64,000 nt of DNA from Penicillus capitatus (GCA_965649825.1 OZ287694.1:1885192-1949191), one strand, 5' to 3'. Shown: positions 1 to 44,612, counted from the first letter of the stretch. A program made the numbers and translations. Notes: generated by a model not told the origin, from the letters alone.

Positions 1-184
1 GTTAGACGCTGGATTCGGAGTGTCTAAGGCGTGTTGCGAGGCATCACTCAGGTGGCGCTGATGACCTCCACACCTGGCTCCGAACTTTGCGCTCCGCCGC
101 ACGCTTAAGACATACGGCTCCACTGCGCTAATGCCACGCCGCCTTCGGGTGACGCGTCACTGGTTCAGTGGGGAGGGTGGGCTT

Positions 185-285
185 GGGGTTATCCTAGCCA
201 ATCCGGATCTTTCCGGATCGCGTCGAGGGTTTTGGTGCTTCGACGTGAAGGGGTCTGACGAGACGGGTGGCTCCGTCGAAACCCT
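185..285 (+). ncRNA. Hammerhead ribozyme A (type III topology, branched stem I), copy 1
   Basis: GGGGUU/AUCCU (185-195) ... GGGGU-CUGACGA-G-ACGG-GUGGCU-CCGU-C-GAAA-CCC. Stem III is ACCC:GGGU and stem I is AUCCU:GGGGU, enclosing two hairpins. AGCCA after stem I is complementary to loop-2 UGGCU. Predicted cut 190/191. Confidence 0.7.
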
Positions 286-464
286 TAGGTCTTCTGTTGA
301 CGTGTCGTCCGTACCGCGCGCGCTCGAATTACGCGTTCAATTCTCGCTCTCCGTGTTGGATCTCGGCCGATGTCCAGCGCACGGGTAGATCTGCCGACAT
401 CGTCCGCGGGTCTTTTTCCTCCGCCGATTCGATGTCGCGTTCGTTCGCGCTGCGGCGCGGGAAA

Positions 465-535
465 GGGGTCTGATGAGACGGATGGCGCCGTCGAAACCGC
501 AGAGTGCTTCGTTGCATTCGGCGGTCACCCCAGCC
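465..535 (+). ncRNA. Hammerhead ribozyme B (type I), copy 1
   Basis: GGGGU-CUGAUGA-G-ACGG-AUGGCG-CCGU-C-GAAA-CCGC-a-GAGUGC-uucguu-GCAUUC-g-GCGG-UC/ACCCC-AGCC. All core nucleotides and three helices present. Predicted cut 526/527. Confidence 0.92.
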
Positions 536-3444
536 AGTCGTTTTTTTCTTTCTGTCTCTTTTTCGCCTATCTATATCTATGTTTCTGCCTACGTGCGTTA
601 ACACTAACTGACCTTTACAGCCGATGGCAAGGCGATCTGCATGTATGTATGTATGTACACATGCTCCCCGCTCGGCTTTAAAGAAGAATTCTTCGCGCTG
701 TGTCTCTCACTCGTTCGTCCTCCTGCCGTTAAGTGATCTGACCCTAGTTTGTTCAACGTGATGGTAGACTTGGAGGCGACGCATTTTTTTGGTATTGGAA
801 AGTGGACCTTTGTACCTACCTAGACCAGAGTGGCAGAGCAGCAGTCCTCTGGATTTCTGATGAGTGGTTCTTAACAGCACATCAACCTTGTCGATCATCA
901 GGACGCCGACGTTGTGCGACACCGCCGTTGCAACGTATAGCGAGCCCGTGAAGCTTTCGAGTGACCTCATTCTCACAACGTGAACCGGCGATTCTCAAGC
1001 TTGCCGTTGCAACGGCGGACTCCATCGCCCGACCGCTTCATTCGCTCTTGCATCAAGAGAATATCACTCCTCAGCGCTGTCGCCGTCTCCACGTCAAACT
1101 ACGTTTTAAACGGAGCGTTCCGTTCTCCTTCAGGTGGGTGGGTGGGTGTCCTGCAAACAGACGTTGGCTATACACAGTGAGTGACCAGAAGCCCGAGCAA
1201 ATGCAAGACGGCCCTTGGCCTGTCAAATCAGAAGCGCGCTGTTCTCTCTTTGCTTTCCAGTCGTCACACCACAACAGACAGAACCGGTGGCCATGCTGAG
1301 ACTGTCCTGTTTTAACATCCCATCTTCTAGGCGAGACGTTGCGGACCGGAATCGAACTTCTAGGTGCTCTCCCCTGAGCACTGCTGCATTAGGAGTGAAG
1401 ATCACCGGGAGTGTCGCGATATAAACCTATGACATGCATTACCGTTTTGGAGTCCCCGATTCAAGGGACATTGATCGCATCAGAACGCGCCGAAGGACTG
1501 AAGGAAGGTGTTTGTCGACGAACGCATAACACAGCTTTCTGGTGCAAGATCCGACGAGATCGCAGCTGCATGGGTTTATGTCCCACGAGATTCGAAAGGC
1601 CGACACACTCGGTGTGAAGCTAGCCGCCGCCAATCGAGAACAACGAATTCAAGAACTTCGATTCCTCACTTCCAACGAAACCTCTTTCTTCCCGCCGCCG
1701 ACCCTCTTCTGAAGTGTTCCACACTTGGTCGTCGCTCACCGGATTGTTTATTCATATGCCGGCGCTTTCAGATGGAGCAAGATCTGTCACAGCTTCGTGC
1801 GACTGTTGTCCTCGTTCCCGCAGATCATCCCAGTGCGCGTCGTCGCCAGTCATGGTCGCATGGATGCGCCAAACGTGCGAAGTCTACAAGAAGACAAATG
1901 AATGAATGACTCGGCACGCCGTCGGAATACACGACGTTTAAGTAAGTAACAGGCGAGAACAGTTCATTATCTACGAGAAAAGCTACGCGGAGCGAGCGAC
2001 TAGTGCTTTCCCAACTCCGTGCATCGATCGCCCTCAGCAACGTCGTCGCGCCAATGTCCTTTCAGATCGTCCACGTAGCGCCGGTGACACACTAGACGAC
2101 AGCAACTCACCATGTCCGACGAGCCAGACAGAGACTATAAAAATTTACTCCTCTGATGACGATACGAGCAGCTAGCTGGATTCAGACAAGTGAGATTAGA
2201 AAACTCCGTCGCCGCAAAAACACAGACAGATGTTGTGTCAACGTTTCCGATTAGGCAAGGAAGCTTTTGGATGCGCTCGTATCGTGGAAGTAGCAGTTGT
2301 GTGTGCCCTGACGACGATAAGACAGACAGACAGACTTTGGTAGATGCGACCTGAACTTATGCCAAGTGTGGCAGCTTCTGGTTGCGTAAGATTGTCTGTT
2401 TCTCGTGACTGAAGCGTCAGTCAGGTCGTAACAAGGAAGCCTGTCGCGCGGAGTATGAGGCGGTTTTTGATGGAATACAAAGGTTACACAATTGACAACT
2501 TTTCAATGAACAAAACGGAGCGAAAAGGTTACTTACAATCAACTTGTACAGCAAACAGAAATAAAGTAACTCGTAAGCAAAGAAGCAGAACAATTCTAAT
2601 CTAATCTTCTTCTTCCCCTTTTACTTAACCCTTCAGGTGCGACAGCTCGGACCGTCGTCTAAGCCGCCGTGCGTGGTCGGTCTTGAAGTGAGAGGTGAAC
2701 GGGAGAGCCGGTGCGTCATAGGTGTTCTCTGAAAGACTTATGCCAGAATGGATAGAGACATTCACGAAGAGGTCACAGTACTCGGCCAGTCTTCCGAACC
2801 CCCCCAAATGCGTTCGGTAGTTTCTCAAATCTCTCTCCGCGCCTGCTCGAAGAGAACGAACAGCTCTCTAGCCGGTGAGGCAGAGGGAGAGGGGGTTCCA
2901 CTGTTAGTTATGACTCTCCCATCCAGTGGGTTTGAAGAGTGGGAGAGAGGACCACTGGCCGAAGAGGAGTCCAGTGGGATCATCGGATAAACGCTGCTGC
3001 GTTCTTTTGCACATTTGCTGTGATTGTTCTGTCGTAAACCGCTCGTTCGGTGACGACTGTTGCCATTGTAGGCTGCTTTCGCATGTTTACACTTTGACAG
3101 TTTTCACGCTGGTAGATCTGTTCCGTCACCTCCGTTAATGCCCGTCACATTCTCCCCGACACGTGTATGTACGGATAAAAAACCGATCGATAAACGCGCG
3201 CGCAAAGCACGAAGCTATGAAGAACATAGAGTACTATTACATACCATTGTTTCGGTTCGACTCATAAGGATCGAACTCAACTTGACAGTGAAACAACCAG
3301 AGCAGTGAATGCGAATGGAGACGGCCGGTTCGACTTATGGCTGTCGAACCCGTCTTGCCAGAGAAACAGCCAGAGCAGTGAATGCGAATGAAGACAGCCG
3401 GTTCGACTTATGGCTGTCGAACCCATCTTGCCAGAGAAACAGCC

Positions 3445-4116
3445 AGGGTCAGCCCCGGCGGAAAAACAGCCGGTTCGACTTATAGAGAGGTCGAACTCTT
3501 GTTGCTCAGACGATGCGTGTGCTTGCCAGAAAAACAGGCCAGGGTCAGCCCCGGCGGAAAAACAGCCGGTTCGACTTATAGAGAGGTCGAACTCTTGTTG
3601 CTCAGACGATGCGTGTGCTTGCCAGAAAAACATGCCAGGGTCAGCCCCGGCGGAAAAACAGCCGGTTCGACTTATAGAGAGGTCGAACTCTTGTTGCTCA
3701 GACGATGCGTGTGCTTGCCAGAAAAACAGGCCAGGGTCAGCCCCGGCGGAAAAACAGCCGGTTCGACTTATAGAGAGGTCGAACTCTTGTTGCTCAGACG
3801 ATGCGTGTGCTTGCCAGAAAAACAGGCCAGGGTCAGCCCCGGCGGAAAAACAGCCGGTTCGACTTATAGAGAGGTCGAACTCTTGTTGCTCAGACGATGC
3901 GTGTGCTTGCCAGAAAAACATGCCAGGGTCAGCCCCGGCGGAAAAACAGCCGGTTCGACTTATAGAGAGGTCGAACTCTTGTTGCTCAGACGATGCGTGT
4001 GCTTGCCAGAAAAACATGCCAGGGTCAGCCCCGGCGGAAAAACAGCCGGTTCGACTTATAGAGAGGTCGAACTCTTGTTGCTCAGACGATGCGTGTGCTT
4101 GCCAGAAAAACAGGCC
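3445..4116. repeat. 96-bp tandem repeat, 7 units, each with two hairpins
   Basis: AGGGTC recurs at 3445, 3541, 3637 ... 4021. Each unit contains CCGGC-n9-GCCGG and GTTCGAC-n10-GTCGAAC. Confidence 0.95.
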
Positions 4117-4222
4117 AAGGACAGGACAGAGGACACCGCGCCCATGCAACCAAGGACAGGACAGAGGACACCGCGCCCATGCAACCAAGGACAGGACAGA
4201 GGACACCGCGCCCATGCAACCA
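4117..4222. repeat. Short array of GGACAGAGGACACCGCGCCCATGCAACC units (about 3)
   Basis: Direct repeats; the same motif is expanded to 20 units at 44611-45210. Confidence 0.9.
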
Positions 4223-5092
4223 ATCAGTGTAATAGTATACCTTCTCTTCCGTTGCCCACGACGATCAGAACAATCGAAACCTTGCCTCAATGGGCGCTTT
4301 CCAGTTTCTTCGACATCCCAAAGCAAACGAGACAAACCTGTTCCCTTGGCGATCTAACCGTCCGATCACGCTACCTTTCCCGCATCCCCTACACCAATTC
4401 CCAGCGCCTCCGCACTATACCTACCGCCGCATGCAAACCCCGTGGAGCGAAATAACATACCGTCTAGTCTACCACTCTCCCTTGTGGGCACCAACGTCTT
4501 CCTCAAGCTGACGACGAAGCAGAGCTTCGTGGCGAAACCGACGCAAGAGATTCACGAACCACGGCTCTTGAGAAAAGAATCCACGCAGAACACCCGAAGC
4601 GTGCTCGCAGTGGCAACGGAAAAACAGAAAAGAAAAAACAACAAGCCTACGACACACACCGACAACGGAAAGACAGCGCTGGCGCGGGAAAGAAAAAACC
4701 ACGTTTCCTACGAAGACACTCAAGGAAAGAGAAAAACGCGCGTCGAGCCATAGAGATCGCAGAACTCAAGGTCAGCATGCAGTCAACCGAGGTACGTGGC
4801 CCCACGGCAATCCTCGTTCCCAAGCCGTCATCGCCCCACGCTCTCCACTATTCGCACACCTAGGTCGTCGTGCTTTGGCCTCACCGCATACTCGCCATCC
4901 ATTTTCTCTCCTTCATCACATATCACCGGTAAACGCATTAGATCGCCAATTCCTTATCCTCTCATGTTGACCCTTGACGTTATCTTCTCTCCTCACCCGC
5001 CTGTCTCGACAAGATTCCGCCTTCCATATAAAAATGCCCGATACAACCGCTGACGAAACCTAATCCGCACACCGGACCGCTTTAACGGTCAT

Positions 5093-22672: not shown

Positions 22673-25600
22673 TGTTGGGAATCGAATGTAAGAGTGGTTC
22701 AGACGATAGTCGAGTCCTTGCGCGTTGAGACGACGGAAACGCAATCAGATTTGATGCGATACGAACAGGAGTGTTTACAGGGTGAAATGTCGACCTTATA
22801 TACCCAGGGTGGTTATGGACTTCCTAACCTTACGTCCTAACAGCTGCGAACTCCTAGTGCATGCAGCATAACCACACCCCTTACGTTATGGGGAAGTTAG
22901 GTCGAGAGCCGACATCCGTCGCGACCGATGGTCGGCGCGCCTGGATGGTTATGTGACGGCTCCACCGCTTCCGGTGGTTACACAGATGACAGTTAAGGGT
23001 TCATTTCCTACAGTGACTCCTCCTCACTTAACACGTCACGTCCCGACGTTTAAGTGACAGAATGAACGAAAACACACAAGTCAGGTAAGAGGTAGAACCA
23101 TTGAGCGTCATGAGAACTTTATTGAGGAGCGATCCACGGCTTCACGCAGAACTGCGGTACTCTCTTCATGCGGCCATCGACCAGAACTCTGCAAGCTCCT
23201 TGATTACCCCACCACGTCACGACACCTTTCTCGAACGCTGCTTCGAGTTTCCCGTGGTCTTCAAGTCGATAGACGCGGACCTCTTTCCCAAGCTCGATGC
23301 GTGGGATCGCGGCTTCTGCAGTCCAGGACTCGCGGATCTTCTTCGCAGAGTCACGAAAACGCTCGCGACAAAGCGCAAGATCGGTCAGACGGTCTGCAAG
23401 GGCGGTCTGCAAGGGCTCTGCATCCCCTTTGCTCTCGCCGGCTAACAGATTCACTTCAGTGCGGCTTTTCGGCACGACCCCTGTGAGAAGTTCGAGTGGC
23501 GACAGGAACTTGCCTCGTCGTGCGTTCACAGCAAACGTCGCAGCCGGGAGGTTCTCGTCCCAGCTTCTCGGATTCTGGCACTTCCTCAGGCGGTCAAGGA
23601 CGAGGCGCTGTACGTTCTCGACTTTGCCATGGCTGCGGGGGTATCGTGGCGTCGACCATCGATGCTCGATCCCGAGATTCTTCACCGTCTCACTAAAAAC
23701 ACCTTGGAACTCCGTCCCGTTGTCCGTCAGGATTCTCTGCGGCACGCCCCAAGCGCAAACGACTTTATTGATAAGGAACTTGAGGGTCTTCGCAGCTCCC
23801 AAGGACGTCAATGCATCTGTTATTACGAATCCTGTGAAGCAGTCGATCGCCGTGACGAATCCTACTGCCTTCCTCGGCGTCGCCGGCAAGCCGACGACCG
23901 TGTCCAACTCGACCAGCTCCCATGGTTCTTCGATGGCAATGGGGATAGTGCTACGGATGGGGGGCTTGGAACCGAATAACTGGCAGGTTTGGCAGGTCTT
24001 CACGAGATCTTGTACTTGCTTGCGCATCTGCGGAAACCAATATCTTTGCCTTACTCGTTGTAACGTTATTTCGGCAGAAAAGTGTCCGACGCAGTGTTCT
24101 TCACCGACGACTGCGCGGACTTGGTTCGGCAGCAGACAAATCTTGCGCCGTCCATCTAAGTCTTCAAAGAAAAGATTGCGCTCACCCCACCGAAATCGAC
24201 TGTCCTGTTCGTTGACCGAGGGGAGGATTTCTGCGTACTCGCGGTAGGCTTGGAAAGCGGAAGCAACGTCTTCGGCCACGAGCGCTGGACATTCATCGCA
24301 TTCTTCTTCTTTATTGACTGGTCGAGGTTCCGAATCTTCATCGACCAGGCGACTCAGTCCATCAGCGTTGCGATGTCTCTCTCCGGGCCTCGTCACATAA
24401 TGGACGTCGTACTCGGACAAGATGAGCTTCCAACGGGCAATACGACCCGTCAGGTCTGTTTTGCGCAGCATATGTGACAATGCTGCATGGTCGGTTCGAG
24501 CGACCACCTTGCGTCCTAAGACATAGACGCGAAATTTCTTGAGCCCGGCAACCAATGCCAATCCTTCTCGCTCGGTGGCTGAGTATCGTGTCTCAGCATC
24601 CTTTAGGAGTCTGGAGTAGAAGTAGATCGGACGCTCTTCACCGTCTTGCTCCTGTGACAAAACGGCCCCGATTCCGTAAGAGCTGGCATCCGTGTCGACG
24701 AGAAAGGGCAGGTCTTCGTTGACCGCCGCCAAAACCGCTCCGTCGACAAGGAGCTTCTTCAACTCCTCCAGTGCCTTCTGGGCGTCGGGAGTCCACAAGA
24801 AGTCTCGTCGTGTCGAAAGGAGACTTGACATCGGCGCACTTACGCCCGCGAAGTTCTTCAGGAAGCGGCGATAATAGGAGAACATGCCGTAAAGAGATTG
24901 CAGTTGTTTTCTGTCCGTCGGCGAGGGCATCCTTGCGATTTTCTCAACTTTCGCTTCATCCATTCTCATCCCTTCTGGGCACAGCCGGTGGCCAAGGAAG
25001 TCGACTTCTCGATAGCCAATAAAGCACTTCTTCGGTTTCAGGCGGAGCCCTCCATTGCGACAGCGCTGAAACACACGCCGCAAGTCTTCAATGATCCCGG
25101 TTTCGTCTTGGTGTGCACAACAGACGTCGTCGATGAAGACGCCGACTCGGTCCAATCCGCCATAGACTTGCTCGACCAAGCGCGAGTAGGCAGCCGGACC
25201 GTTCGTCACTCCAAAGGGGAGGACAAGCCAGCAATAGACACCGAAGCTTGTGGCGAAGGCCGTCTTTAGTACGGATTCAGGATGCAGACCAAGGGAATAA
25301 TATCCACTGAATCCGTCGAGGGCCGAGTACCACGCGTGACCCATGACGCGGTCCAGCAGGTCGTCCGCCCGTGGCAGCACGAACTTGTCTGGAATGGTGG
25401 CGTCGTTGAGGCGCTGGTACGCACAACAGAATCGAAAGGTACCGTCTTTCTTTGGGGCGATGGTGATCGGCGACAACCAACGATCCTTGCGTTTTGGGCA
25501 ACCATATTTTCTCGCGGCCTCTTCCCACGGGATGATTAGCTTGGCTTCAAGCAGCTCGTCGATTTGTGCCTTGACGAACTCAGTTTCTTTTGGCGCCAGG

Positions 25601-27943
25601 CGTCGCGTCCGGCCACAGCGCTTCGCGACTTCTCCTTGACGCAACTCGATTTCAAATTGCATGAGCGGTGTTCTGACCATGTCTTGAAAGGTTAGTGCAA
25701 AGCAGTCTACGTATTCACTGACGAGAGAGCGGATATCCGAAAGCACCTCAGGCTTCAATTTCGGGTTGACGTGCAATTCGCCAAGCACTTGGTCACTCAG
25801 TGCAAGGAAGCATTCGTCCTCGTCCTCACTCTCGCTATCGCTGGCGAGGGCTTGCATTTGCTCGATCAACTCCTCCAGTGCAGCGGCCATATCGGATTCG
25901 CTGCTGGCATCGGAGGTATCGTCTTCAACAGCTGCGGGTTGCTTTTTCGCGAAAAACAGTTTGCGCCACTTCGGCACGACCGTAATGCGCTTCTTCACTC
26001 CGAAGGTATATGTTCCTTCTTCGAAGTCGGCTCGGCTGCGGACGGTGCGCAGCCAGTCCGTACCGAGAAGAATGTCATATGAATTCTTCGTCGGCAGGAC
26101 ACTGAAAGCTTGATGTATCCAAACACCGCCCACTTCGACGCGAACTTCGTCAGTGCGTCCTAGCGGCTTCTGGACAGAACCATCCGCAAGCAGTAACGTT
26201 CCTTGGCTGGGCGTAGTGTGCCTGATGCGGAATTGACGGGCGAATTCCGCATCCATTATGGAGTTCGAGGAGCCAGGGTCTACAATCACCTTGGGCACGA
26301 ACTGCCCTGCGACGAATACCTTGCATCGCTCGAGCCAGTCCCTGCCGCCTCGTTTCTGTGCGAGGGTGGCTTGGTACGGCTGCGGTCCTTGCGGTTGTTG
26401 AGCTGCCGGTTCCATATATACGTCGGTCTGCTGCGGTGGTGCTGAGGCAGAAGGCTCATCCTCGCCCTTCTTCTTTTTAGGCTTTGGAGTGAAACCGAAC
26501 GCGTCTCTTAGCGCCAGTATCACTTGGGAGTAGACTTCACGTTTGCTGCGTCCTTTCAGGAAACGCAGCGGAATGGCCCATGCTTGAGCAGCGTAATCCG
26601 CCCACTCACGGTCGAGCTCGGGCTTCTTACGCGGTTTCCGCGCTTTTTTCCCAGCCGCACCTCGGCGTCGCTTACTGGGTTGCTGCTCATCTTCATCCGC
26701 CATTCTGGCGGTTGCTTCAGCCCTCTCGTTGTCTTCACCCTCGGACACAGACTCAACGAAGCGAGACGCGTTGCATTCCGCGCGTCTTGCGCGTCGCTTT
26801 TCCTGCCTCTTTGCAAGCAGGCCTGTCAGTCCGGAGATGAGTTGACGGAGTTCTTCGTCTTCGGAGTCATCCGCCGCCGGTTCCTCAGCCACGATGGTTG
26901 TGGTTCTTCGCCCTGTCTTCGCAAGGCGACGAGCTCCGTTCTCCTTGAGGACCGTCGGATGGTTACGATTTTCATGTTGGGGTTCAGGTTCGTCTTCCTC
27001 TTCGTCAGTCTCCTCGTACCCTCGGACATTCTTGCGCGCCTCCGTCGCGTACTTCGCATAGCGAACGGCATATTCGTAGGTTGGCGCGTTGTTGCTTGCA
27101 GCAAGTCGAGTGAATGCGTATTCTGCCGCGCGGTCATTCCGGAGGCCTCTCAGCCAGTACTTGTAGTAATCGTCTGGGTCGACAGCAGGCTGAGCTCTAG
27201 AACACATCAAGGCGAAGCGCTCAGCGTACGCGATCAAGGATTCTCGTCGCTTCTGGAAGATGTGTCTGAGCTGGTCTCTGGCGCGGTCAGGGTCCTGGTC
27301 GCGAACAAAACGGTCGATCACCAGCTGACTCCAATCGGCCCAGTCGATATTCAGATGGGCGTCGGCGTCATGGTGCAGTTCCGCCCAATCCGCGGCTGGT
27401 CCGTCAAGCAAGGTGACGGCGATTTCGGCTCGCGTCCCGGGCTGGTCCTCTATTTGCTGCAGGCGGAAGAGCGAGGTCATCTTGCTGACCCATCTCCTAG
27501 GGTCAGTGCGTCCATCGTAACGCGGGAAGGCAATCGACTCAATGCGCATGGCTTGTCAGAGATGATAGAAAACGCTCGACAGTTGCCCCGGAGGTCCACC
27601 AGATGTTGGGAATCGAATGTAAGAGTGGTTCAGACGATAGTCGAGTCCTTGCGCGTTGAGACGACGGAAACGCAATCAGATTTGATGCGATACGAACAGG
27701 AGTGTTTACAGGGTGAAATGTCGACCTTATATACCCAGGGTGGTTATGGACTTCCTAACCTTACGTCCTAACAGCTGCGAACTCCTAGTGCATGCAGCAT
27801 AACCACACCCCTTACGTTATGGGGAAGTTAGGTCGAGAGCCGACATCCGTCGCGACCGATGGTCGGCGCGCCTGGATGGTTATGTGACGGCTCCACCGCT
27901 TCCGGTGGTTACACAGATGACAGTTAAGGGTTCATTTCCTACA
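22673..27943 (-). mobile_element. Full-length Ty3/Gypsy LTR retrotransposon
   Basis: 340-bp LTRs at 22673-23012 and 27604-27943, TG...CA, identical by eye. TSD GTTAT at 22668-22672 and 27944-27948. Primer-binding site (PBS) TGGTGGACCTCCGGGG at 27601-27586; polypurine tract (PPT) AAGTGAGGAGGAG next to the 3' LTR. Confidence 0.97.
23119..27549 (-). CDS. Gag-Pol polyprotein (1476 aa; Gag-PR-RT-RNaseH-IN)
   Basis: Single ORF with PR VIVDPGSS, RT LDGFSGYY and FIDDV, RNase H DTDASSYGIGAVLSQ, IN H..GH...CQTC, ELDTV, TDNGTEF and KVEN. Domain order is Gypsy-type. Confidence 0.97.
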   Translation of the reverse strand: MRIESIAFPRYDGRTDPRRWVSKMTSLFRLQQIEDQPGTRAEIAVTLLDGPAADWAELHHDADAHLNIDWADWSQLVIDRFVRDQDPDRARDQLRHIFQKRRESLIAYAERFALMCSRAQPAVDPDDYYKYWLRGLRNDRAAEYAFTRLAASNNAPTYEYAVRYAKYATEARKNVRGYEETDEEEDEPEPQHENRNHPTVLKENGARRLAKTGRRTTTIVAEEPAADDSEDEELRQLISGLTGLLAKRQEKRRARRAECNASRFVESVSEGEDNERAEATARMADEDEQQPSKRRRGAAGKKARKPRKKPELDREWADYAAQAWAIPLRFLKGRSKREVYSQVILALRDAFGFTPKPKKKKGEDEPSASAPPQQTDVYMEPAAQQPQGPQPYQATLAQKRGGRDWLERCKVFVAGQFVPKVIVDPGSSNSIMDAEFARQFRIRHTTPSQGTLLLADGSVQKPLGRTDEVRVEVGGVWIHQAFSVLPTKNSYDILLGTDWLRTVRSRADFEEGTYTFGVKKRITVVPKWRKLFFAKKQPAAVEDDTSDASSESDMAAALEELIEQMQALASDSESEDEDECFLALSDQVLGELHVNPKLKPEVLSDIRSLVSEYVDCFALTFQDMVRTPLMQFEIELRQGEVAKRCGRTRRLAPKETEFVKAQIDELLEAKLIIPWEEAARKYGCPKRKDRWLSPITIAPKKDGTFRFCCAYQRLNDATIPDKFVLPRADDLLDRVMGHAWYSALDGFSGYYSLGLHPESVLKTAFATSFGVYCWLVLPFGVTNGPAAYSRLVEQVYGGLDRVGVFIDDVCCAHQDETGIIEDLRRVFQRCRNGGLRLKPKKCFIGYREVDFLGHRLCPEGMRMDEAKVEKIARMPSPTDRKQLQSLYGMFSYYRRFLKNFAGVSAPMSSLLSTRRDFLWTPDAQKALEELKKLLVDGAVLAAVNEDLPFLVDTDASSYGIGAVLSQEQDGEERPIYFYSRLLKDAETRYSATEREGLALVAGLKKFRVYVLGRKVVARTDHAALSHMLRKTDLTGRIARWKLILSEYDVHYVTRPGERHRNADGLSRLVDEDSEPRPVNKEEECDECPALVAEDVASAFQAYREYAEILPSVNEQDSRFRWGERNLFFEDLDGRRKICLLPNQVRAVVGEEHCVGHFSAEITLQRVRQRYWFPQMRKQVQDLVKTCQTCQLFGSKPPIRSTIPIAIEEPWELVELDTVVGLPATPRKAVGFVTAIDCFTGFVITDALTSLGAAKTLKFLINKVVCAWGVPQRILTDNGTEFQGVFSETVKNLGIEHRWSTPRYPRSHGKVENVQRLVLDRLRKCQNPRSWDENLPAATFAVNARRGKFLSPLELLTGVVPKSRTEVNLLAGESKGDAEPLQTALADRLTDLALCRERFRDSAKKIRESWTAEAAIPRIELGKEVRVYRLEDHGKLEAAFEKGVVTWWGNQGACRVLVDGRMKRVPQFCVKPWIAPQ

Positions 27944-30900
27944 GTTATTCAACCGCCGTTAGAATGGAAGCCGGAAGACGTAGACCGGTGAGCAGCATTG
28001 CGCGTTTCGACCTACCTTTCACTGCTCATTCTGATTAACGGACAGGTTCGTCTCCGAGCATGGAACCCGTGTTATTGATGCCAAGGACGAGTGCGGATTG
28101 CCTATTTACTGGGATGCCATTCTGAAAGGGCAATACGACTGCGCAAACATGCTGATCGGTTACGCAAAGAACAACGGAATTGCCGTGACATTTCGAGAAG
28201 AGGATGCAGATCTGCTGTTGTGGGCAATCGAGACAGATTTATACAACATTGTCAGATTCATTCTGGAAAAGCTCACGGAGAAATGCGCTTCTGTTGAAGA
28301 AACGAGCGATCTCCTAACGAGACATCTACTCACCATCGGCGAAAGATGTCCCGAAATGCTAGCTGATCTCCTCGAGAACGATAAGTTTACCATCGAGTAT
28401 GCCAGATTTCAAGTACCGAAGGCTGTTTTTGATAGCAACAGCAAGATTCCAAAAACCATGATCACAAGGACGATACCGGACAACTGGGCGGCGATGGATG
28501 GGGAACAGGGAAAGGGTTTATGGATCGAGCGCTGGAGACAAGAGGCTCATTCATTGGGCACCACTTCAGATGCGCAGATGTGGGTCGTTGCTAAGGTTTT
28601 CTGCATCAATTTTTCAGTACCTCGGAAAGAACAGAACGCATTGCTATCGTCTTTCCTGTGTATACTCGACCTCCCGAGCACCGAGGAGAAGCAGCGTCCT
28701 TGCGAATACCTCTACGATCTGCGCTTTCCAGTGGAAGTTTTCGAATCTGAAACGATGGTGAATTTCATTGACCACTGGTTTCGAGTTTATCTCCCCATCT
28801 ACCAAATCATCATCATCCTGGATAGCGTAGCCACTTTAGCCTTTACAATCTTCTCCTTGACATTTGGACATCCAGACGAAATCGGAAATACAAGTTTTAG
28901 ACTTTTGATGTGCCTGATATTCACTCCCACCATTCTAAAATCTTTTGGAGCGTATTACATCCGGTCTTTTCGAAGGTCAGCAACCACTCGCATGCTTCTT
29001 CTTCCGGCTATTTCTGAGATAGATGGGTGCAGGTTCAGTAGCTGGATGATTGACTTTACGTTGATGCTGCTAGCCCTTTACACTCACGAACATGATCATC
29101 TCATCAAACCTTGCGCCTTTCTGATGTCCCTCATGTGCATCCTTCAATGGATCTCGGTATTTACCAAATCAATTCTGCCTTCACTTAGTTTGTTCACGCA
29201 CTCTAGATGTTTTTCTTGTTGCAGCCGTTTGAACAAATCGGGACGTTCGTCTCAATGATGACTTCAGCCGTCTTGAACTCCTGGCGTTTTTTGTTGTTAA
29301 TTACTCTGTTCATTGTCGGGTATTCGTCAGCATTTGTGGCACTCTATAATAATGTGTCCATTGGAGATGACGAAGGAAACTTCGATTCTCTTTGGCATGC
29401 AATCCAAACCTTCATCTTCGCATGTCTTGGGAACTTCGAAGTAGAAGTACGTTCTCATTAACTTCCCCTGCTATGTCTTTGATGTTAAATCTGATGCTCA
29501 TGTAGATGTTTCGTTCCTCAAACAGCTTTTTTGCGATTTGGGCCACTCTGCTGTTTGTTTCATTCGTCTACATTTTGCCGATCATACTGATCAGTGTGCT
29601 GATCGCCATTGTGCAAGATATCTACGACAGAGTTCGATCGAAGGAGAAAGCAGAGCTGCGAAGACTCCGTCTACAGATTGTCTCCGGATTTCAATGTCTG
29701 AGTTTTGACAAAGAACACACATGGTAAGTCTTCGAAGCATCGTCGGAATCTAAAGCTCACTGTCATGTTTGATGGCGCTGCAGCAACCTTATTGCGCTTT
29801 TCCTTCGCTTTTTGTCAGGCCGTTTACGTCGACTCTTTCGCCCACTGCAACATACAAGGACGGCTGATGAAGTTATCGAGAATGAATTGAATGGACATTA
29901 CTTCCACTTTCTGGTTCCTGAAGTCAATGGACTAGAATCACATCACGACGAATGGCAGGGCAAACTGGTGGCAATGGAAAGAACCATAAAGTCAGAGGTC
30001 CAAAAGAATGAGAGAAGTTTGAAGGAGAAACTCGAACTACTGGAACGCAAGATAGATAAACTGACAACAATGTTTGAGGCTTGACAAGGAAACTACAGAA
30101 GACGACAACCTCCAGGAGGAAAGCTTGAAGGTGTTATGCCAAAGGGAGAATGGACAAATGGAAACTGTAGTGGATTGAATCCTTCACAAATTGGATGCGA
30201 TTGATCTATCTTCCAATTGAACAGTATCGTGGCACATTTAAACGCACAGTGTTTAGCGTAAAGCTCCTTCAGGAGACTTCCATTTCTTAATTGCATAGAG
30301 CAAACGTCGATTGCCATTTACTCTGAGCATTTTAGGAGTATCTTTTGTTGACACCACCAACCGCATCAGGTTTTTCTAAATGTGCGTGTGACGATGACCT
30401 ATGTGTTGCCAATGAGTTTGATGAACGACAGAAATTGCTGTTGAACAATCAAATGTTTACAAGTCCATTGTTAATCGTCGAGAATGGGACAAATCTGTAA
30501 GCATTGGAGCACTTTGAGATTCGCTTTCTGGTTCTCCCATATAAGCTGACAGGCATGCTTGTTCCGATAGGCTGTAGGCCGGGTTGCCATACACCTCCAA
30601 AGGACGGCTGGCGATATACTTTACCCGAGGGCGACGGCTGACTGGGAAAAAGATTTAGGTATCAATCCGTGCAGAGAGATATTCCGTTCTGTCGTTCGGC
30701 TGGAAATATCGGCGGCCGTGAGGTGGTCAACTACTAAGTTTCGTCCATACCTCTCGATCGCTGATCTTTGCATCGTATTCACTTTATGTCTTACGGGATC
30801 CTGCTTTCCTCGGCAATGGGCTCTCTGTTGTTCGATTTTCTTTCTTCTTCCGTGTCAGGAAAGGACTGTCCTTTCCTAGCTTCTGTGCACAACACGATGC

Positions 30901-35562: not shown

Positions 35563-37304
35563 TTTGCTTTCTCGTCTGTCGGTCTGTCTGAGAAAACGTG
35601 TCGTCAAGTGCGAGAAAAGACGAACAATGAACGCGTTCCGTCGATGAGTCTGACGGACGACGCGGCATCCGTTTATTCGCCATCATCTCATGTGTACGGC
35701 CATTACTTCATGTGCCAAGATCACTTTGCTTGCTAGTTATTCTCTTGTTACGCTAACGGAATCTCCCTGCGTCTGAATCTTTAGAAAGTCGTTCGCCGAG
35801 CAACCACGCCGCGCGAGACTGTTCCGCTGTGTCTCGCGTGCGATCTTCGCTCGTCAAGGAGCACAACGCGTTGCCTTTGTGCGAGGTAATGCCCTCCTAC
35901 TGTGTCTAACGTCTTGAGGGATGTCAGAAGGCCGCGACGGTCGTAGCCAATGCTACAACAGCTGATTCCCTGCGTCTCTGTCTGCCACATATCTCCTGGC
36001 CGATGGTCCTGGCCATGCGGCTGTGTGCGGTGACCAACCTCTCCCTGAGGACTCTGCTCTCCGTTTACTAAACTGACAGCAGTTCCGCTGCCGTCGTCTT
36101 GCAGAGGCGGGAGACGAATGCAGCCTCTTAGACCAAGGCGTGGGGAAGACATCGAAAAGTGCGGCGCTCTGTCCTACAAACACCTTCTCGTAAGCGACGT
36201 GCAAAAAGGAGGTGGTCTACGTAGGTCTCGACGATGAGAAGAAGCGACTGCTCTTCTTCCATAAAGGTCGAGCCACTGCGAAGAGTCTGAAGATTCCTGG
36301 CAGCACGTTGGAGAATCGTTTTCGAATCCAAACTATTGCGGAATAGTGTAATGTCGGGATCTACGCTCATTCGAAGAAGTCTACCATCCCCATCCATCCC
36401 TGTGGACACGATTGATCTGGCACTCCAGAAAGGTACTGTCTTTGTTTTATGGAGAAACCATCATGCACTAATATTTCCATCCACCTGCCTCCTCATCTTG
36501 TCAGGCTATGTCTCTTCGTATCCATCTCTCTTTTGAATTCCAGCGGCTTCGGCGAATCGCTGACATACACGGTACACGATATTGGCGTATGATCGAAACA
36601 GGCTGTTCTCTGTGCACACGGCATTTCCAACTGTCGAAAGAGAACAAGTCACCTGACAGCAGTGATCATCACACGTTGGGGGTGTCGCTGTCAGATGCGA
36701 TTCCACTGTCTTGACATCCAGGAACCGTCCAGCCGGTGACAGGTAAACGCTGCAAGGTCCAGGTTGTCAGAAGGTCTTTCCTCTGCCCTGGAATCTTCTT
36801 TGTCGTCACGTCTTCGACGCTGTTCAGTCGATGGTGCCGATGTGGATGTTCAAACAACACAAGTGGCTGTTTCTGTGAGATTAGGAAGAATCAGATCTCT
36901 ATGTGATGGATCGTCTGTGGATGTACAAAGTGAGAATGTGTGGAACTAGTGTCTACATCCAAGATCTGACATATGTGAAATGGCTCGATCTTACCCCGGC
37001 TTTATAGCTGGGCCAATCCATCTTCACATAACTAACTCTCTACGAAGTGCAGAAGACATGGATGCTGCGCTCTTACACAGTTCGGAGACCGACATGTGCA
37101 ATTCTCGCAATCGCTGCCGTATCTGGCAGACTTCTTCGCTCTTTAAGCACTTGCCATAAAGATGGAAACATCTTAACATGGAAGCATCGACAGGTTACTG
37201 ACAAGACAAACTGCTACAGGTCCAAAAGAGAAGCAGGTAAGTTTCAAATGCCCGGATGCTGTCCGTCATGGATCAGGAAGGACGACTCGGTGGTGAAGAC
37301 CTGT

Positions 37305-38351
37305 TTAGGTCATCGGGTACATATCGGACGCCTTCTCATCCACTACTTCATCGTCTGCTTCTGAAGTGTACTTGAGATGACCGGAGAAGATTGTAATCGG
37401 ACCATACTTCCCAACAGCTTCCTGGACTTTAAAATGCGAGCCCGGATAGACGTCGACCTTTACTCTTTCCGAACGACTCTGATGAAACGCGCTTCGTTCC
37501 ACCGTCGACCAATCGAAATGAATACTGCTGCTGATCTTGAGCTGAAAAATTCTTCCGAAACCTGCTGACGCACTTACAGACGTAGAGAAAGACCCCGCTC
37601 TCGTCGACTCTCTTTCCAGATTCGTGCCTCTTGCGTATTCCAATTCGACTCCTATTATCGATTTGCCAGCCTTGTTGTCAAACTCCGTGATGGTGACCCA
37701 CTTATCAGACGCTTCCCATTCTTTGTCGCCTTCTTTCCACCCGACAAATCGATTGCGGCCTTGAGTCTTTGATTTCCAGCTACCGCAGTAGAGCACACTG
37801 TTGGTCCAAAGGAAAATAAAATGGTACGGCGCCCTGGCTCTGCGAATCATGAGATTGTCGTTATTCTCGTCGAGATAAAGATGGAAACGTTCCCAGGTGT
37901 GGATCTCTCCCCTTCCTTCGACATCGCCTTCGTCTTCGCAACACAACCATTGCTGAGTTTTGGTGTTTTTGATAGCAAAGACTCCATCGTCGACTATATA
38001 AAGTTCAAATCGATGCGCCTCTTCACAATTCTCTCCGTCGGCGCGGAACCTTCCGCTTCCCGAACGCGCATCGTGACGCACAAACTTCAAGTTTGTGCCG
38101 AGGAGGGCGATGTACCGCGTTCCGACACTGACGCCGTCATTTCCCGGCCCCACTTGAAAACGCCACAGCTGGTCGGTGTTCGTCACTCGGACGGTAGAAG
38201 GATTCTTAACGCTTCGCGTCGGACGCCGTAGCTGGTTGGGGTTCGTCGCTTGGACGGTAGAAGTATTCTTGACACTTCTTGCAGAACGGACCTCGGTTGC
38301 GACTGCCGTTTCAGTAAACAGCAGCAACAATGCGACAGATGTGAAGGACAT
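37305..38351 (-). CDS. Secreted protein (348 aa): fascin-like beta-trefoil plus aerolysin/ETX-MTX2-like pore-forming domain
   Basis: True start MSFTSVALLLLFTETAVA (signal peptide) at 38351, then two 21-aa repeats. Fascin-like motifs (FAIKNTKTQQWLCCEDEGDVEGRGEIHTWERFHL). Alternating Ser/Thr-rich hairpin TRAGSFSTSVSASAGFGRIFQLKISSSIHFDWST flanked by beta strands. Intronless. Domain calls are by pattern recognition only. Confidence 0.65.
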   Translation of the reverse strand: MSFTSVALLLLFTETAVATEVRSARSVKNTSTVQATNPNQLRRPTRSVKNPSTVRVTNTDQLWRFQVGPGNDGVSVGTRYIALLGTNLKFVRHDARSGSGRFRADGENCEEAHRFELYIVDDGVFAIKNTKTQQWLCCEDEGDVEGRGEIHTWERFHLYLDENNDNLMIRRARAPYHFIFLWTNSVLYCGSWKSKTQGRNRFVGWKEGDKEWEASDKWVTITEFDNKAGKSIIGVELEYARGTNLERESTRAGSFSTSVSASAGFGRIFQLKISSSIHFDWSTVERSAFHQSRSERVKVDVYPGSHFKVQEAVGKYGPITIFSGHLKYTSEADDEVVDEKASDMYPMT

Positions 38352-38848: not shown

Positions 38849-38915
38849 GGCTAGGGTGACTGCTCAGTCGAGTGACCGAACAGTTTCGACGGCGCCACCC
38901 GTCTCATCAGACCCC
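38849..38915 (-). ncRNA. Hammerhead ribozyme C (type I), copy 1
   Basis: Minus strand: GGGGU-CUGAUGA-G-ACGG-GUGGCG-CCGU-C-GAA-ACUGUUCGGUC-acuc-GACUGAGCAGU-C/ACCCU-AGCC. 11-bp stem III, 5-bp stem I. Predicted cut between 38858 and 38857. Confidence 0.93.
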
Positions 38916-39016
38916 TTAAGAGTTTTTGCCGATTTAGCGCTATCCAGTCCCGCCACGAGGAGGCACGGCTCGACGTTGCGTTGGCAAACGCACCGCCGTT
39001 GGGACCACATTTTTGT

Positions 39017-39424
39017 GGGGTAATCAATCACGAAATGAAATGCCATTCTTTTGGGGGGTAATCACGAAATGAAATGCCATTCTTTTGGGGGGTAATCACG
39101 AAATGAAATGCCATTCTTTTGGGGGGTAATCACGAAATGAAATGCCATTCTTTTGGGGGGTAATCACGAAATGAAATGCCATTCTTTTGGGGGGTAATCA
39201 CGAAATGAAATGCCATTCTTTTGGGGGGTAATCACGAAATGAAATGCCATTCTTTGGTAATCACGAAATGAAATGCCATTCTTTGGTAATCACGAAATGA
39301 AATGCCATTCTTTGGTAATCACGAAATGAAATGCCATTCTTTGGTAATCACGAAATGAAATGCCATTCTTTGGTAATCACGAAAGTGCCTTGGGTAATCA
39401 CGAAAGTGCCTTGGGTAATCACGA
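39017..39424. repeat. 29/34-bp satellite GGTAATCACGAAATGAAATGCCATTCTTT, 11 units plus 2 degenerate
   Basis: Six 34-bp units (extra TGGGG) followed by five 29-bp units; no spacers. Confidence 0.95.
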
Positions 39425-39998
39425 GGATGTCCTTCCTTCCGGGATTCCTCAACCAGGTCGAAGGGAAGGCCCGCCTACGGGAGGCGGCCTCCCACTTCGC
39501 CTTCGGGACTAACGGGTGGGCCCGACGCCGTAGAAGCCGTTCAACAGTCCGCGCCACAACGGTCGCACGATTGCCGCCATCGACGGCAGCGTCTCATGCG
39601 CTGTGTGAAAGGATCTTTTTCGACGGACAACCGAACGACGAGTTCGACGTAGTGGGACCGGAGCTGCGCAACTGTGGGGGAGTATCTCCCGGAAAGAAGG
39701 GCCATCCGAGGATGTCCCCCCGATCCGAGATTCCTCAACCAGGTCAAAGCAAAGGCCGCCTACAGGAGACGACCCTTACCCCGCCTTCGGGACTAACGGG
39801 TGGGCCCGACGCCGCAGAAGCCGCTCAACGGCCCCCGCCACAACCGCCGCACGATTGCCGCCGTTCTCGGCAGCGTCTCATGCGCTGTGTGAAGGTCTTC
39901 GATACTGCAAAACTTCAATATGACGGACAATCGAACGACGCGTTCGACGCATCCGGACTGGAACTGCGCAACTACGGGGGAGTATCTCACGGAAAGAA
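39422..39998. repeat. Diverged tandem dimer of a 285-bp GC-rich hairpin-rich module
   Basis: CGAGGATGTCC starts at 39422 and 39707. Both units keep CC-TTCG-GG, GCAGCG/CGCTGT and GGGAG/CTC(C/A)C inverted repeats. Also at 59641-60217. Confidence 0.85.
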
Positions 39999-40023: not shown

Positions 40024-40337
40024 CTTATATACCCCTTCAGATGATGTGACAGCGTCACATCGTTTTGTCGCGCAATCAGCCAATCACGACGCGAGTTCAG
40101 AGTACCAACCGTCGGAAGAAGAAGCAGGGAGGAAGGCGTCGATGCAGCCGATAGCCAATCACGTTCCGGTTTGGGAATATTCCATCTGTCACATCAGAAT
40201 ATTCCATCTGTCACATCAGAATATTCCATCTCCGTCGTCGGTTTTTCGTCGATTCGGCCACTCAGCGCGCATCTATGGCAGTCTAACCGTCCTCAAGGTG
40301 ACGTTGACAGGGTCGCGTCAACATCCAAGTATTTAAG
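40024..40337. promoter_or_regulatory. Putative bidirectional Pol II promoter
   Basis: TATATAAG on the minus strand (40031-40024) and TATTTAAG on the plus strand (40330-40337). CCAAT at 40080 and 40155, palindrome GATGTGAC-agc-GTCACATC, and 22-bp repeats x2.5. Second copy at 60243-60556. Confidence 0.5.
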
Positions 40338-40440
40338 GGGCACCGCGACGCGCATTTCGTCTTTTGTCGTTTGGGCGGTTCTACTGGTGGCGTTCTCGCT
40401 CGCGGGTTTCGGCTCGGAACTTAAACGCTTTCCGGGGTCA

Positions 40441-40745
40441 GTGCTGCCACATGCTGTAAGCCGACCAACACGATGCGTGGGCTGCGGAGAGGCACCCCTC
40501 GTGAGCGGGGGAAAGCCGACGATCTTCAGTCACCGCACCGTAGTTGGCGCCTGCGAAGGTCGTTAGACGCTGTATTCGGAACTCAGAACGCCTACCGGGC
40601 TAGTGCTGCCACATGCTGTAAGTCGACCAACACGGTGCCGTTAGCTATGGGGAGGCACCCCCTCGGGGGCGGGGGGAAACCGAGGATCTATAACCACCGC
40701 ACCGTATTGGCGCCTGCGAAGGTCGTTAGACGCTGGACTCGGAGT
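40441..40745 (+). repeat. Diverged tandem dimer of a 162-bp structured module
   Basis: GTGCTGCCACATGCTGTAAG starts at 40441 and 40603. Long stems CCAACACG.TGC / GCACCGTA.TTGG in both units. Also at 60660-60964; its tail is visible at 1-20. Confidence 0.85.
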
Positions 40746-40908
40746 GTCTAAGGCGCGTTGCGAGGCTTCCCTTCGGGGAAGCTGATGACCTCCACACCTG
40801 GCTCCGAACTTTGCGCTCCGCCGCACGCTTAAGACATACGGCTCCACTGCGCTAGTGCCACGCCACCTTCGGGTGACGCGTCGCTGGTTCAGTGGGGAGG
40901 GTGGGCTT

Positions 40909-41009
40909 GGGGTCATCCTAGCCGTTCCGGATCTTTCCGGACCGCGTCGAGGGTTTTCGTGCCTCGACGCGAAGGGGTCTGACGAGACGGGTGGCGCCGT
41001 CGAAACCCT
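40909..41009 (+). ncRNA. Hammerhead ribozyme A (type III topology), copy 2
   Basis: GGGGUC/AUCCU-AGCC ... hairpin CGCGUCGAGG:CCUCGACGCG ... GGGGU-CUGACGAG-ACGG-GUGGCG-CCGU-CGAAACCC. Canonical GUC site; predicted cut 40914/40915. Confidence 0.78.
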
Positions 41010-41191
41010 AACTAAGTCTTCCGTTTACGTGTCGTCCGTACCGCGCGCGCTCGAATTACGCGTTTTGTTCTCGCTCTCCGTGTCGGAGCTCGGTCGATGT
41101 CCAGCGCACGGGTAGATCTGCCGACATCGTCCGCGGGTCTTCTTCCTCCGCCGATTCGATGTCGCGTTCGTTCGCGCTGCGACGCGGGAAA

Positions 41192-41262
41192 GGGGTCTGA
41201 TGAGACGGGTGGCGCCGTCGAAACCGCAGAGTGCTTCGTTGCATTCGGCGGTCACCTCAGCC
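41192..41262 (+). ncRNA. Hammerhead ribozyme B (type I), copy 2
   Basis: Same fold as 465-535. Stem I 3' strand is ACCUC (C-G changed to U.G, pairing kept). Predicted cut 41253/41254. Confidence 0.92.
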
Positions 41263-44058: not shown

Positions 44059-44612
44059 CAGCCAGTTCGACTTATAGAGAGGTCGAACTCATGTTGCAGA
44101 GACGATGCGTGCGCTTGCCAGAAAAACAGGCCAGGGTCAGCCCCGGCGGACAAACAGCCGGTTCGACTTATAGAGAGGTCGAACTCTTGTTGCTCAGACG
44201 ATGCATGTGCTTGCCAGAAAAACAGGCCAGGGTCAGCCCCGGCGGAAAAACAGCCGGTTCGACTTATAGAGAGGTCGAACTCTTGTTGCAGAGACGATGC
44301 GTGTGCTTGCCAGAAAAACAGGCCAGGGTCAGCCCCGGCGGAAAAACAGCCGGTTCGACTTATAGAGAGGTCGAACTCTTGTTGCTCAGACGATGCATGT
44401 GCTTGCCAGAAAAACAGGCCAGGGTCAGCCCCGGCGGAAAAACAGCCGGTTCGACTTATAGAGAGGTCGAACTCTTGTTGCTCAGACGATGCGTGTGCTT
44501 GCCAGAAAAACAGGCCAGGGTCAGCCCCGGCGGACAAACAGCCGGTTCGACTTGTAGAGAGGTCGAACTCTTGTTGCTCAGACGATGCGTGTGCTTGCCA
44601 GAAAAACAGGCC
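44059..44612. repeat. 96-bp hairpin tandem repeat, about 5.5 units
   Basis: Same unit as 3445-4116. Confidence 0.95.

Follow-up and report, generated by a model that had tools for sequence, protein, structure and literature searches.

A dispersed family of putative small-RNA units with paired type III and type I hammerhead motifs in the green alga Penicillus capitatus and in metagenome assemblies

Hammerhead pairs encoded in genomes occur in the long terminal repeat (LTR) retrozymes of plants and in the tandem retrozymes of animals. Such ribozyme pairs are known to produce small circular RNAs, and tRNA ligase is the enzyme that joins the ends in the case of retrozymes (PMC7229834, PMC5680766). 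Related arrangements occur in Penelope-like elements, which are present in the green lineage and whose pseudo-long terminal repeats (pLTRs) carry hammerheads as well as a transcription start (PMC8557442); animal retrozymes have been proposed to derive from these repeats (10.64898/2026.07.22.740005). In RNA viruses of fungi and plants, type I hammerheads located in 5′ untranslated regions (UTRs) drive cap-independent translation (10.1101/2024.05.16.594327). As for green algae, putative tandem-hammerhead retrozyme sequences have been noted (PMC5680766), and our literature searches found no paper linking hammerheads to Bryopsidales-like green algae. The DNA considered here, hereafter the window, is a stretch of 64,000 nucleotides (nt) from Penicillus capitatus (GCA_965649825.1, OZ287694.1:1885192-1949191). 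A first-pass annotation had proposed that two hammerheads at 185-535, repeated at two further places, would excise a small, potentially circular RNA similar to those of viroids or retrozymes. Our analysis suggests that the three copies probably belong to a multi-copy family of genes for small, non-coding RNAs, with self-processing of the kind known from retrozymes. Beyond what the annotation had described, the pair is part of a larger unit with a promoter-like block (40158-41262), which is multi-copy and dispersed, and a third, paralogous hammerhead lies in opposite orientation 2 kb upstream; a decayed relic is also present.

Hammerhead motifs A, B and C

A descriptor requiring the core, the A15.1-U16.1 pair, H17 (UH) and helices I, II and III of at least 4 bp each identified eight hammerheads in the window, as against an expectation of 0.005 per window from 200 dinucleotide shuffles. 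Six of them, the A and B motifs, lie on the plus strand, and two, denoted C, on the minus strand. Together with inspection of the sequence, this count bears out the presence of two complete same-strand hammerheads in all three copies. The cut sites predicted for copy 1 (190/191 and 526/527) and the cut-to-cut distances of 336, 339 and 339 nt were also confirmed. One further candidate core, at 4508-4538, was rejected as non-canonical, having extra bases between helix II and GAAA. The A and B motifs are the following:

179-285, plus strand: hammerhead A, copy 1, type III topology, cut 190/191
179-189 and 281-285, plus strand: 5′ strand (GGGCUUGGGGU) and 3′ strand of helix III of A, copy 1, with U17 at 190
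191-195 with 250-254, plus strand: helix I of A, copy 1, enclosing hairpins 202-217 and 219-247
196-199, plus strand: AGCC of A, copy 1; core CUGACGA at 255-261, helix II at 262-277, GAA at 278-280
465-535, plus strand: hammerhead B, copy 1, type I, C17 at 526, cut 526/527
465-469 and 527-531, plus strand: 3′ and 5′ strands of helix I of B, copy 1, followed by AGCC at 532-535
470-476, plus strand: core CUGAUGA of B, copy 1; helix II at 477-492, GAA at 493-495, helix III hairpin at 496-525
40903-41009, plus strand: hammerhead A, copy 2, cut 40914/40915
41192-41262, plus strand: hammerhead B, copy 2, cut 41253/41254
61122-61228, plus strand: hammerhead A, copy 3, cut 61133/61134
61411-61481, plus strand: hammerhead B, copy 3, cut 61472/61473

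In all three copies, A and B have the core CUGANGA, GAAA, the A15.1-U16.1 pair and a helix II of 5 bp (GACGG/CCGUC), the near-identity of which had been pointed out. H17 is U or C in the A and B motifs, and C, U or A when all motifs are taken together. The core nucleotides C3-U4-G5-A6-N7-G8-A9 and G12-A13-A14 are exact in 8/8 window motifs as well as in 16/16 motifs of the eight units of the family described below. Helices I, II and III comprise at least 5 bp each, and 97-98% of the helix cells are paired (98% over the eight units), compared with 25-52% when the partners are slid. The minimum-free-energy (MFE) fold of B is exactly the hammerhead junction; in copy 1, helix II and its loop read GACGG-AUGGCG-CCGUC, helix I pairs GGGGU with the ACCCC that follows C17, and helix III (A-CCGC...GCGG-U) is lengthened by a second stack of 6 bp. 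Hammerhead A carries a B-type cassette at 250-285, with C at N7, and its cut site (GGGGU-U/AUCCU) is located 65 nt upstream of its core, so that helix III is open and the topology is of type III. Its helix I, AUCCU/GGGGU, is closed by two inserted hairpins. For the copies of A and B on contig L005, introduced below, the MFE structure is likewise the hammerhead fold, with z = -3.0 for A. The mixed pair proposed at the outset, one ribozyme of type III and one of type I, is real, and it is retained in 8/8 independent units. The context given for both cuts, GU(C/U)/A(U/C)C(C/U)(U/C)AGCC, is also correct, and the A, B and C motifs are all followed by A-Y-C-Y-Y-AGCC.

Loop II exists in several variants (GUGGCG, GUGGCU, GUGGCA, AUGGCG and GCGGCG), in all of which GGC is constant. 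This GGC and the GCC that follows helix I are complementary and invariant in every copy, and RNAalifold, applied to the excised RNA, pairs the 5′-terminal AGCC with loop II of B. The two constant elements probably form a 3-bp tertiary contact, GGC:GCC, that links loop II to the tail of helix I, as hammerheads of this kind require. Hammerheads commonly have pseudoknots that connect helices I and II (PMC3088659).

The annotation had suggested a check against the Rfam hammerhead models, which went the other way: at the gathering threshold no match was obtained in the whole window, A and B included, and the E-value mode, run on five sub-regions, gave no hammerhead match on the A and B sub-regions. 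The sole support from Rfam concerns hammerhead C, which aligns below threshold, in the correct register, to RAGATH-1-hammerhead (RF03152; 21.1 bits versus a gathering score of 56.3, E = 0.08). The motifs have the catalytic core and the three-helix junction in common with RF00163, RF00008, RF02275-7 and RF03152, yet every copy stays below the gathering score, among other reasons because helix I of A is branched and the loops of helix III are long. This shortfall lies with the models and not with the hammerhead class, and the failure of curated models to reach threshold on the family implies that similar families are still uncounted. The lack of a match at threshold might nevertheless be taken to mean that the motifs are chance look-alikes or dead fossils devoid of activity. 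Indeed, decay is clear in several relatives, namely L004, L007 at 1088-1130, the C copy of L007 with its U4 to C change, and the relic at 39580. The finding of 8 motifs where 0.005 were expected, the invariance of the core nucleotides in 16 ribozymes whose spacers have diverged to ~50% identity, and the pair-preserving nature of all helix changes make this explanation hardly credible. The motifs are almost certainly real hammerheads and, judging from their sequences, would very probably cleave themselves in vivo.

The ribozyme unit, its relatives and the predicted excised RNA

Two ENA metagenome assemblies, ERZ25074695 and ERZ26696514, yielded five further A-B pairs, distributed over four contigs (L005-L008). 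L005 was recovered with a padded profile of the translated hammerhead, spurious open reading frames (ORFs) having been called across these regions, and L006, L007 and L008 through three ORFs that phmmer retrieved from 1.84 billion representatives with ORF 41097-41327 of the window as query. According to the descriptor L005 contains one A-B pair. L007 contains one pair, a C copy inactivated by the U4 to C change and the decayed core at 1088-1130; L008 contains C plus an A-B pair; and L006, which comes from the other assembly, has A-B (minus), A-B (plus), C (minus) and A-B (plus) within 3.6 kb. The head-to-head arrangement of a unit with another unit or with C is recurrent, being found in the window, L006 and L008. 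Live and decayed members are thus both present in the family, the latter represented by L004, by the two L007 motifs just mentioned and by the relic.

Contig L004 (JGI Ga0099817_1511750), which belongs to an unrelated metagenome and was the one copy returned by an exact-pattern DNA scan of JGI metagenomes, has the same 33-nt hammerhead cassette at 357-430. It adjoins the apparent last exon of a trypsin-like protease. With the ACCC partner of helix I shifted by 8 nt, this copy is probably inactive. An exact-pattern scan of IMG/VR returned no copy.

Between the window and L005 (~85% identity), only 2 changes affect the 79 structural positions of A and B, both of them exchanges of one pyrimidine for another opposite G in helix I, as compared with 86 changes in 922 positions elsewhere in 40350-41350 and 38 in 270 in the rest of the A-B interval. 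Over the eight units, the mean pairwise identity is 88% in the A block and 85% in B but drops to 61% in the spacer and 46% downstream; when the window lineage is compared with L006, the corresponding values are 85%, 82%, 49% and 39%. As far as such alignments can tell, the ribozymes and their pairing are what selection keeps.

Every unit has the same layout, consisting of a promoter-like block, a leader of 200-560 nt, A, a spacer of ~220 nt and B. In the two units that are complete at their 5′ side, unit a (copy 2) and unit b (copy 3), the parts upstream of the A cut are:

40158-40352, plus strand: promoter-like block of unit a, with a CCAATCA box, three 22-nt repeats (40175-40240) and TATTTAA (40330-40336)
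40353, plus strand: initiator-like CATTT motif
40353-40914, plus strand: leader of unit a that A would cut off, ~560 nt, 2.5 copies of a 163-nt module
~60377-60571, plus strand: promoter-like block of unit b
~60572-61133, plus strand: leader of unit b

The leader of copy 1 is clipped by the start of the window (1-190 present), and in L006 and L007 the leader measures ~200-260 nt. The three tandem 22-nt repeats (40175-40240; 9077-9140 in L005) each contain the palindrome GGAATATTCC and GTCACATCA. The former resembles the GAAnnTTC palindrome of heat-shock elements; the latter recurs in L006, where it precedes the TATA box by ~12 nt. These repeat elements may be a regulatory motif of the ribozyme-unit family. 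The start-site block, GTCACATCA...TATTTAAGGGG...CATTTCG, is kept in every unit, and in L006 two such blocks stand back-to-back. From the resemblance of its motifs, this block is probably a TATA-type promoter, with a predicted start near 40353. A reading as a polymerase III gene, suggested by a T-run after B, is unlikely, the T-run being unconserved and a T6 run occurring just past the start site in L006; no tRNA genes were found when the window was checked.

On the other side, homology between the most diverged copies ends directly after the AGCC of B, which delimits the unit as promoter block, leader, A, spacer and B. The DNA 3′ of B is non-coding: relative to a diverged copy, the substitutions show no 3-base periodicity and the indels are not multiples of three. 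A coding gene downstream of B is thereby ruled out.

Multi-copy, dispersed units with live and dead copies may also be regarded as non-autonomous retroelements, either strict retrozymes or derivatives of Penelope-like terminal repeats, in which the hammerheads process a transposition intermediate that undergoes reverse transcription and re-insertion. The head-to-head units recall the inverted 5′-truncated copies and inverted pLTRs of Penelope-like elements (PMC8557442), an origin from pLTRs is the one proposed for animal retrozymes (10.64898/2026.07.22.740005), putative tandem-hammerhead retrozymes are on record for green algae (PMC5680766), and nearby Ty3/gypsy elements could supply reverse transcriptase (RT). 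However, LTRs are absent, the direct repeat around A and B being just 36-44 nt long; there is no primer-binding site (PBS) in or near the unit that matches tRNA-Met or the resident Ty3 element, the PBS of the latter occurring at 27588 only; and tandem monomers are absent, the segment upstream of A being unrelated to the A-B interval. The absence of LTR, PBS and polypurine tract (PPT) around the pair, and with it the departure from the plant-retrozyme layout, had been recognized in the first-pass annotation. Neither a Penelope RT nor a GIY-YIG domain occurs in the ORFs scanned with Pfam (those of at least 200 amino acids in the window, and the L005 genes) or among the Pfam tags of the other loci. 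The minimal dimeric hammerheads of Penelope-like elements also differ from the present ones, in which helix III is long. Moreover, no copy lacks the promoter block or the DNA on the 5′ side of the A cut; since the copies include sequence outside the excised RNA (promoter, leader and 5′ strand of helix III), they were not made by reverse transcription of a circle. A retroelement origin of the units therefore seems unlikely.

Under the preferred reading of the units as small non-coding RNA genes, the product would probably be the RNA excised between the two cuts. The corresponding features are:

191-526, plus strand: predicted excised RNA, copy 1, 336 nt
40915-41253, plus strand: predicted excised RNA, copy 2, 339 nt
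61134-61472, plus strand: predicted excised RNA, copy 3, 339 nt
301-459, plus strand: structured spacer domain, copy 1, in which 301-335 pairs with 422-459, with hairpins 351-384 and 391-409
41028-41062 with 41149-41186, plus strand: spacer helices, copy 2, from RNAalifold of the eight units

In the eight units, the cut-to-cut lengths are 336, 339, 339, 341, 353, 353, 355 and 371 nt. The excised RNA is predicted to have a 5′-OH and a 2′,3′-cyclic phosphate. The spacer had been described as hairpin-rich; single sequences gave no support on this point, being no more stable than their shuffles, and the consensus gave strong support: folded as a circle, the excised fragment has a consensus MFE of -81.9 kcal/mol compared with -48.7 +/- 4.9 for column-shuffled alignments (z = -6.7). 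The consensus also pairs ACCCU, the 3′ strand of helix III of A, with GGGGU, the 3′ strand of helix I of B. Over the 41 pairs of the spacer helices 91.7% of the cells are paired, as against 27-50% with slid partners, and 10 pairs (17 cells) are altered on both sides, numbers that were reached by 2/500 and 0/500 shuffles. These counts are supportive of a conserved fold rather than proof of it, given that the eight related sequences in which the pairs were counted had also served to derive the structure. The designation as viroid-like had to be dropped, as the fragment contains no ribozyme of opposite polarity and is DNA-encoded behind a promoter-like block. A reading as a Zeta-like or endless ORF was likewise rejected, because the best frame has one stop per turn and the lengths of 341, 353, 355 and 371 nt are not multiples of three.

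The following course of events may be envisaged. Transcription would start near 40353. Hammerhead A would fold during transcription, cut 65 nt upstream of its own core and shed the capped leader, after which B would fold and cut after GUC, so that the two cuts would free an RNA of 336-371 nt with 5′-OH and 2′,3′-cyclic phosphate ends. The freed ACCCU of A and GGGGU of B could then pair, closing the spacer into a stable branched fold and switching both ribozyme cores off. Such ends are a substrate for tRNA ligase or RtcB-type enzymes, which makes a circle plausible; an enzyme of this kind may join them. It was correctly noted that ligation would rebuild hammerhead B with AUCCU as the helix I strand, the junction being GGCGGUC followed by AUCCUAGCC. 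By analogy with retrozymes, formation of a circle with this junction is conceivable, if on balance somewhat doubtful. Hammerhead C, a paralogue in a separate small unit of divergent orientation, would trim the transcript of that unit in the same way.

Several points weigh against the reading of the units as genes for a self-processed small RNA. Besides the negative Rfam searches and the derivation of the spacer structure from the sequences on which it was assessed, the fragment of a single sequence folds no more stably than its shuffles (z = -1.1 and 0.0), and the rod-like stability of single sequences is not significant. The GGC:GCC contact has no covariation in its favour, as neither element ever varies, and the promoter is assigned by resemblance of motifs. 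Finally, when the window is compared with L005, conservation is higher in the leader than in the spacer, and for this reason the leader may be a product too. The leader is not a specially stable RNA (z = 0.03), and its 163-nt modules have no compensatory pairs.

One may go further and regard the units as bona fide cellular genes, as opposed to transposons, in which the type III and type I pair makes an abundant, structured circular RNA of ~340 nt with a function for the host in siphonous green algae and a built-in refolding switch that would turn both ribozymes off after excision. We consider this rather unlikely. If true, it would add a third, gene-like architecture for ribozyme-made circular RNAs beside the LTR and tandem retrozymes.

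Hammerhead C and the surrounding DNA

The minus-strand motifs of the window are as follows:

38849-39000, minus strand: hammerhead C unit, copy 1, type I; motif 38915-38849, cut 38858/38857
39000-38918, minus strand: ~85-nt domain of C, copy 1, followed by the cassette at 38917-38883 and by ACCCUAGCC at 38857-38849
58579-58730, minus strand: hammerhead C unit, copy 2; motif 58645-58579, cut 58588/58587
39580-39596, minus strand: decayed hammerhead-like relic TGAGACGCTGCCGTCGA with mutated core positions, inside a 290-nt repeat; second copy at 59799-59815

The 35-nt cassette of C, AAGGGGUCUGAUGAGACGGGUGGCGCCGUCGAAAC, is 100% identical to that of B. Helix III of C has a different sequence of 10-11 bp that is still paired, and its flanks are unrelated to those of B. 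When C is aligned with three B variants, 96.7% of the helix cells are paired, compared with 25-52% for slid partners, and in helix III two pairs differ in both of their nucleotides, as compensatory changes. For the relic, the chance expectation is 0.07; apart from this short sequence, the hammerhead monomers have no homology beyond the core with the neighbouring 290-nt and 163-nt repeats.

The ~85 nt upstream of C (38918-39000, minus strand; 4190-4275 in L006; also in L007 and L008) are nearly invariant in four loci from two assemblies. This domain is more conserved than all nearby sequence and folds into an irregular hairpin; it has no match in Rfam. The RNA 3′ of the C cut (38857-38843, minus strand) begins with ACCCUAGCCCUAAAG and includes a single CCCUAAA unit, which is complementary to the telomere repeat of the plant type. 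Hammerheads combined with telomere-repeat tracts are a feature of endonuclease-minus (EN-minus) Penelope-like elements. A telomeric link of CCCTAAA was rejected, as the window contains no telomere arrays and the motif is lost in L006 and L007.

A gene for a secreted protein of 348 amino acids (37305-38351, minus strand) has its ATG 507 nt downstream of hammerhead C, on the same strand. This proximity would suit an explanation in which the ribozymes are processing signals for host transcripts, shedding capped leaders so as to control genes nearby or to permit cap-independent translation, with C acting on this gene, or else defining the 3′ end of a functional leader RNA. All sequence upstream of the coding sequence is locus-specific and lacking in the paralogous L001 and L002 (see below); the type I hammerheads of viral 5′ UTRs offer an analogy (10.1101/2024.05.16.594327); and of all parts it is the leader that has changed least between the window and L005. 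However, nothing coding follows B, and in L006 C precedes another ribozyme unit rather than a gene. Conservation collapses ~9 nt past the cuts of C and B, several ATGs are found between the C cut and the ATG of the gene, and a role of C for this gene is weakened by the very fact that L001 and L002 have no C. The leader is, in addition, thermodynamically ordinary (z = 0.03) and varies from 200 to 560 nt among units. Processing of host transcripts is thus a quite improbable role for these ribozymes.

The 348-amino-acid protein has a signal peptide, a short N-terminal repeat and a weak similarity to beta-trefoil proteins (Symfoil, FGF1; E ~0.07-0.9), with no match in Pfam. Its only relatives among 5.8 billion proteins are three, all from one ENA metagenome assembly, to which L001 also belongs. 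The 348-amino-acid gene that adjoins L006 is unrelated to it. The second copy of the gene is split (~54337-55020 and 57720-58100), and a gag-only LTR element of 2.7 kb (55036-57721) sits inside this copy, in unit b, while unit a is uninterrupted at 37998-38004. The LTRs of this element, 238 nt long, are identical; it has a zf-CCHC ORF (56517-57422) and a 28-nt array in its interior, and a PBS-like TGGTTTCGGAGC is located at 55273.

The two contigs L001 and L002 (ERZ25074695) have ~75% DNA identity to the window gene at 36864-38227 and to 27948-30026. They have no hammerhead and a simpler order, and they adjoin a nitrate reductase gene; the arrangement of the window looks derived from theirs by insertions and duplications. 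The nitrate reductase of L001 comes closest to green-algal enzymes, with 61% identity to that of Caulerpa lentillifera (60% of the length being covered), 54-55% to those of Ostreobium and Bryopsis, and ~53-54% to those of Volvocales; on this tentative basis the host is probably a siphonous, Bryopsidales-like green alga.

The window itself, eukaryotic with a G+C of ~51%, is made of large segmental duplications: 1-5117 matches 40725-46153 and 60944-64000, and 35028-42939 matches 52059-63156. The three copies in the window are consequently paralogous segments, not independent insertions. An apparently intact Ty3/gypsy LTR retrotransposon occupies 22673-27903 (minus strand), with two LTRs of 300 nt that are 100% identical, a single gag-protease-RT-RNaseH-integrase ORF of 1476 amino acids (23119-27549) and the PBS TGGTGGACCTCCGG at 27588-27601; the identity of its LTRs suggests a recent insertion. 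Minisatellites are found downstream of the ribozyme unit (3368-4243 and 43960-45360; 96-nt and 30-nt units) and between C and the promoter-like block (39000-39420 and 58768-59725; 34/29-nt units), and the lengths of the arrays differ between the duplicated units.

Comparison with known systems

Loci processed by ribozymes are already known, including the putative algal tandem hammerheads (PMC5680766). As far as our literature searches show, there is no precedent for the architecture, for the conservation of the spacer fold, for C as an antisense partner or for the lineage. With ~450 nt of DNA, the A-B pair provides a compact system for asking whether ribozyme-made RNAs are host genes or parasites, and the same system bears on complementary leftover strands as a post-cleavage off-switch.

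The metazoan non-LTR retrozymes (PMC7229834) are likewise DNA-encoded, have two same-strand hammerheads ~170-400 nt apart, include a type I hammerhead, release a small structured RNA with ligatable ends, and are devoid of LTR, PBS and PPT. The 336-371 nt of the excised RNA fall within their monomer size range (170-400 nt). In contrast, the present units combine type III with type I instead of repeating identical type I monomers in tandem, each is preceded by a promoter-like block and a leader of its own, they occur in a green alga, the long helix III makes dimeric action unnecessary, and there is no sign that copies arose from the excised RNA. The LTR retrozymes of plants (PMC4918200) have in common with the units a type III hammerhead, a promoter inside the repeated unit, a G+C of ~61% and the predicted 5′-OH and 2′,3′-cyclic phosphate ends that tRNA ligase uses. 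They differ in their LTRs, PBS and PPT, in their length (600-1000 nt versus 336-371 nt) and in that the second ribozyme is of type I here; the two LTRs of ~300-400 bp, each with a type III hammerhead, by which they are defined were not found around the A-B pairs.

The pLTRs of Penelope-like elements (PMC8557442) combine direct and inverted (head-to-head) hammerhead repeats with a transcription start inside the repeat; head-to-head arrangements recur among our units too, but their junctions hold conserved promoter-like blocks. The units differ from them by their stable helices III, by the lack of a nearby RT or GIY-YIG ORF (the RT ORFs of the window and L005 are of the Ty3/gypsy pol type only, and the other loci bear no RT tags) and by showing no microsatellite target or tail. 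Totivirus-like ribozyme pairs and the 5′-UTR hammerheads of mycoviruses (10.1101/2024.05.16.594327) are comparable in their spacing (186-399 nt) and in type I hammerheads with a long helix III; they reside in RNA virus genomes, whereas the present pairs reside in cellular DNA, lack a stop-free ORF and have a length that is not always a multiple of three. From viroid-like replicons of the Avsunviroidae type the units are set apart by the absence of a minus-strand ribozyme in the A-B interval and by being encoded in nuclear-type DNA. The proposed working of the locus is retrozyme-like, yet the defining features of both kinds of retrozyme are missing from it. It is best filed as a promoter-bearing, dispersed small RNA locus of a green alga that is processed by a mixed pair of type III and type I ribozymes.

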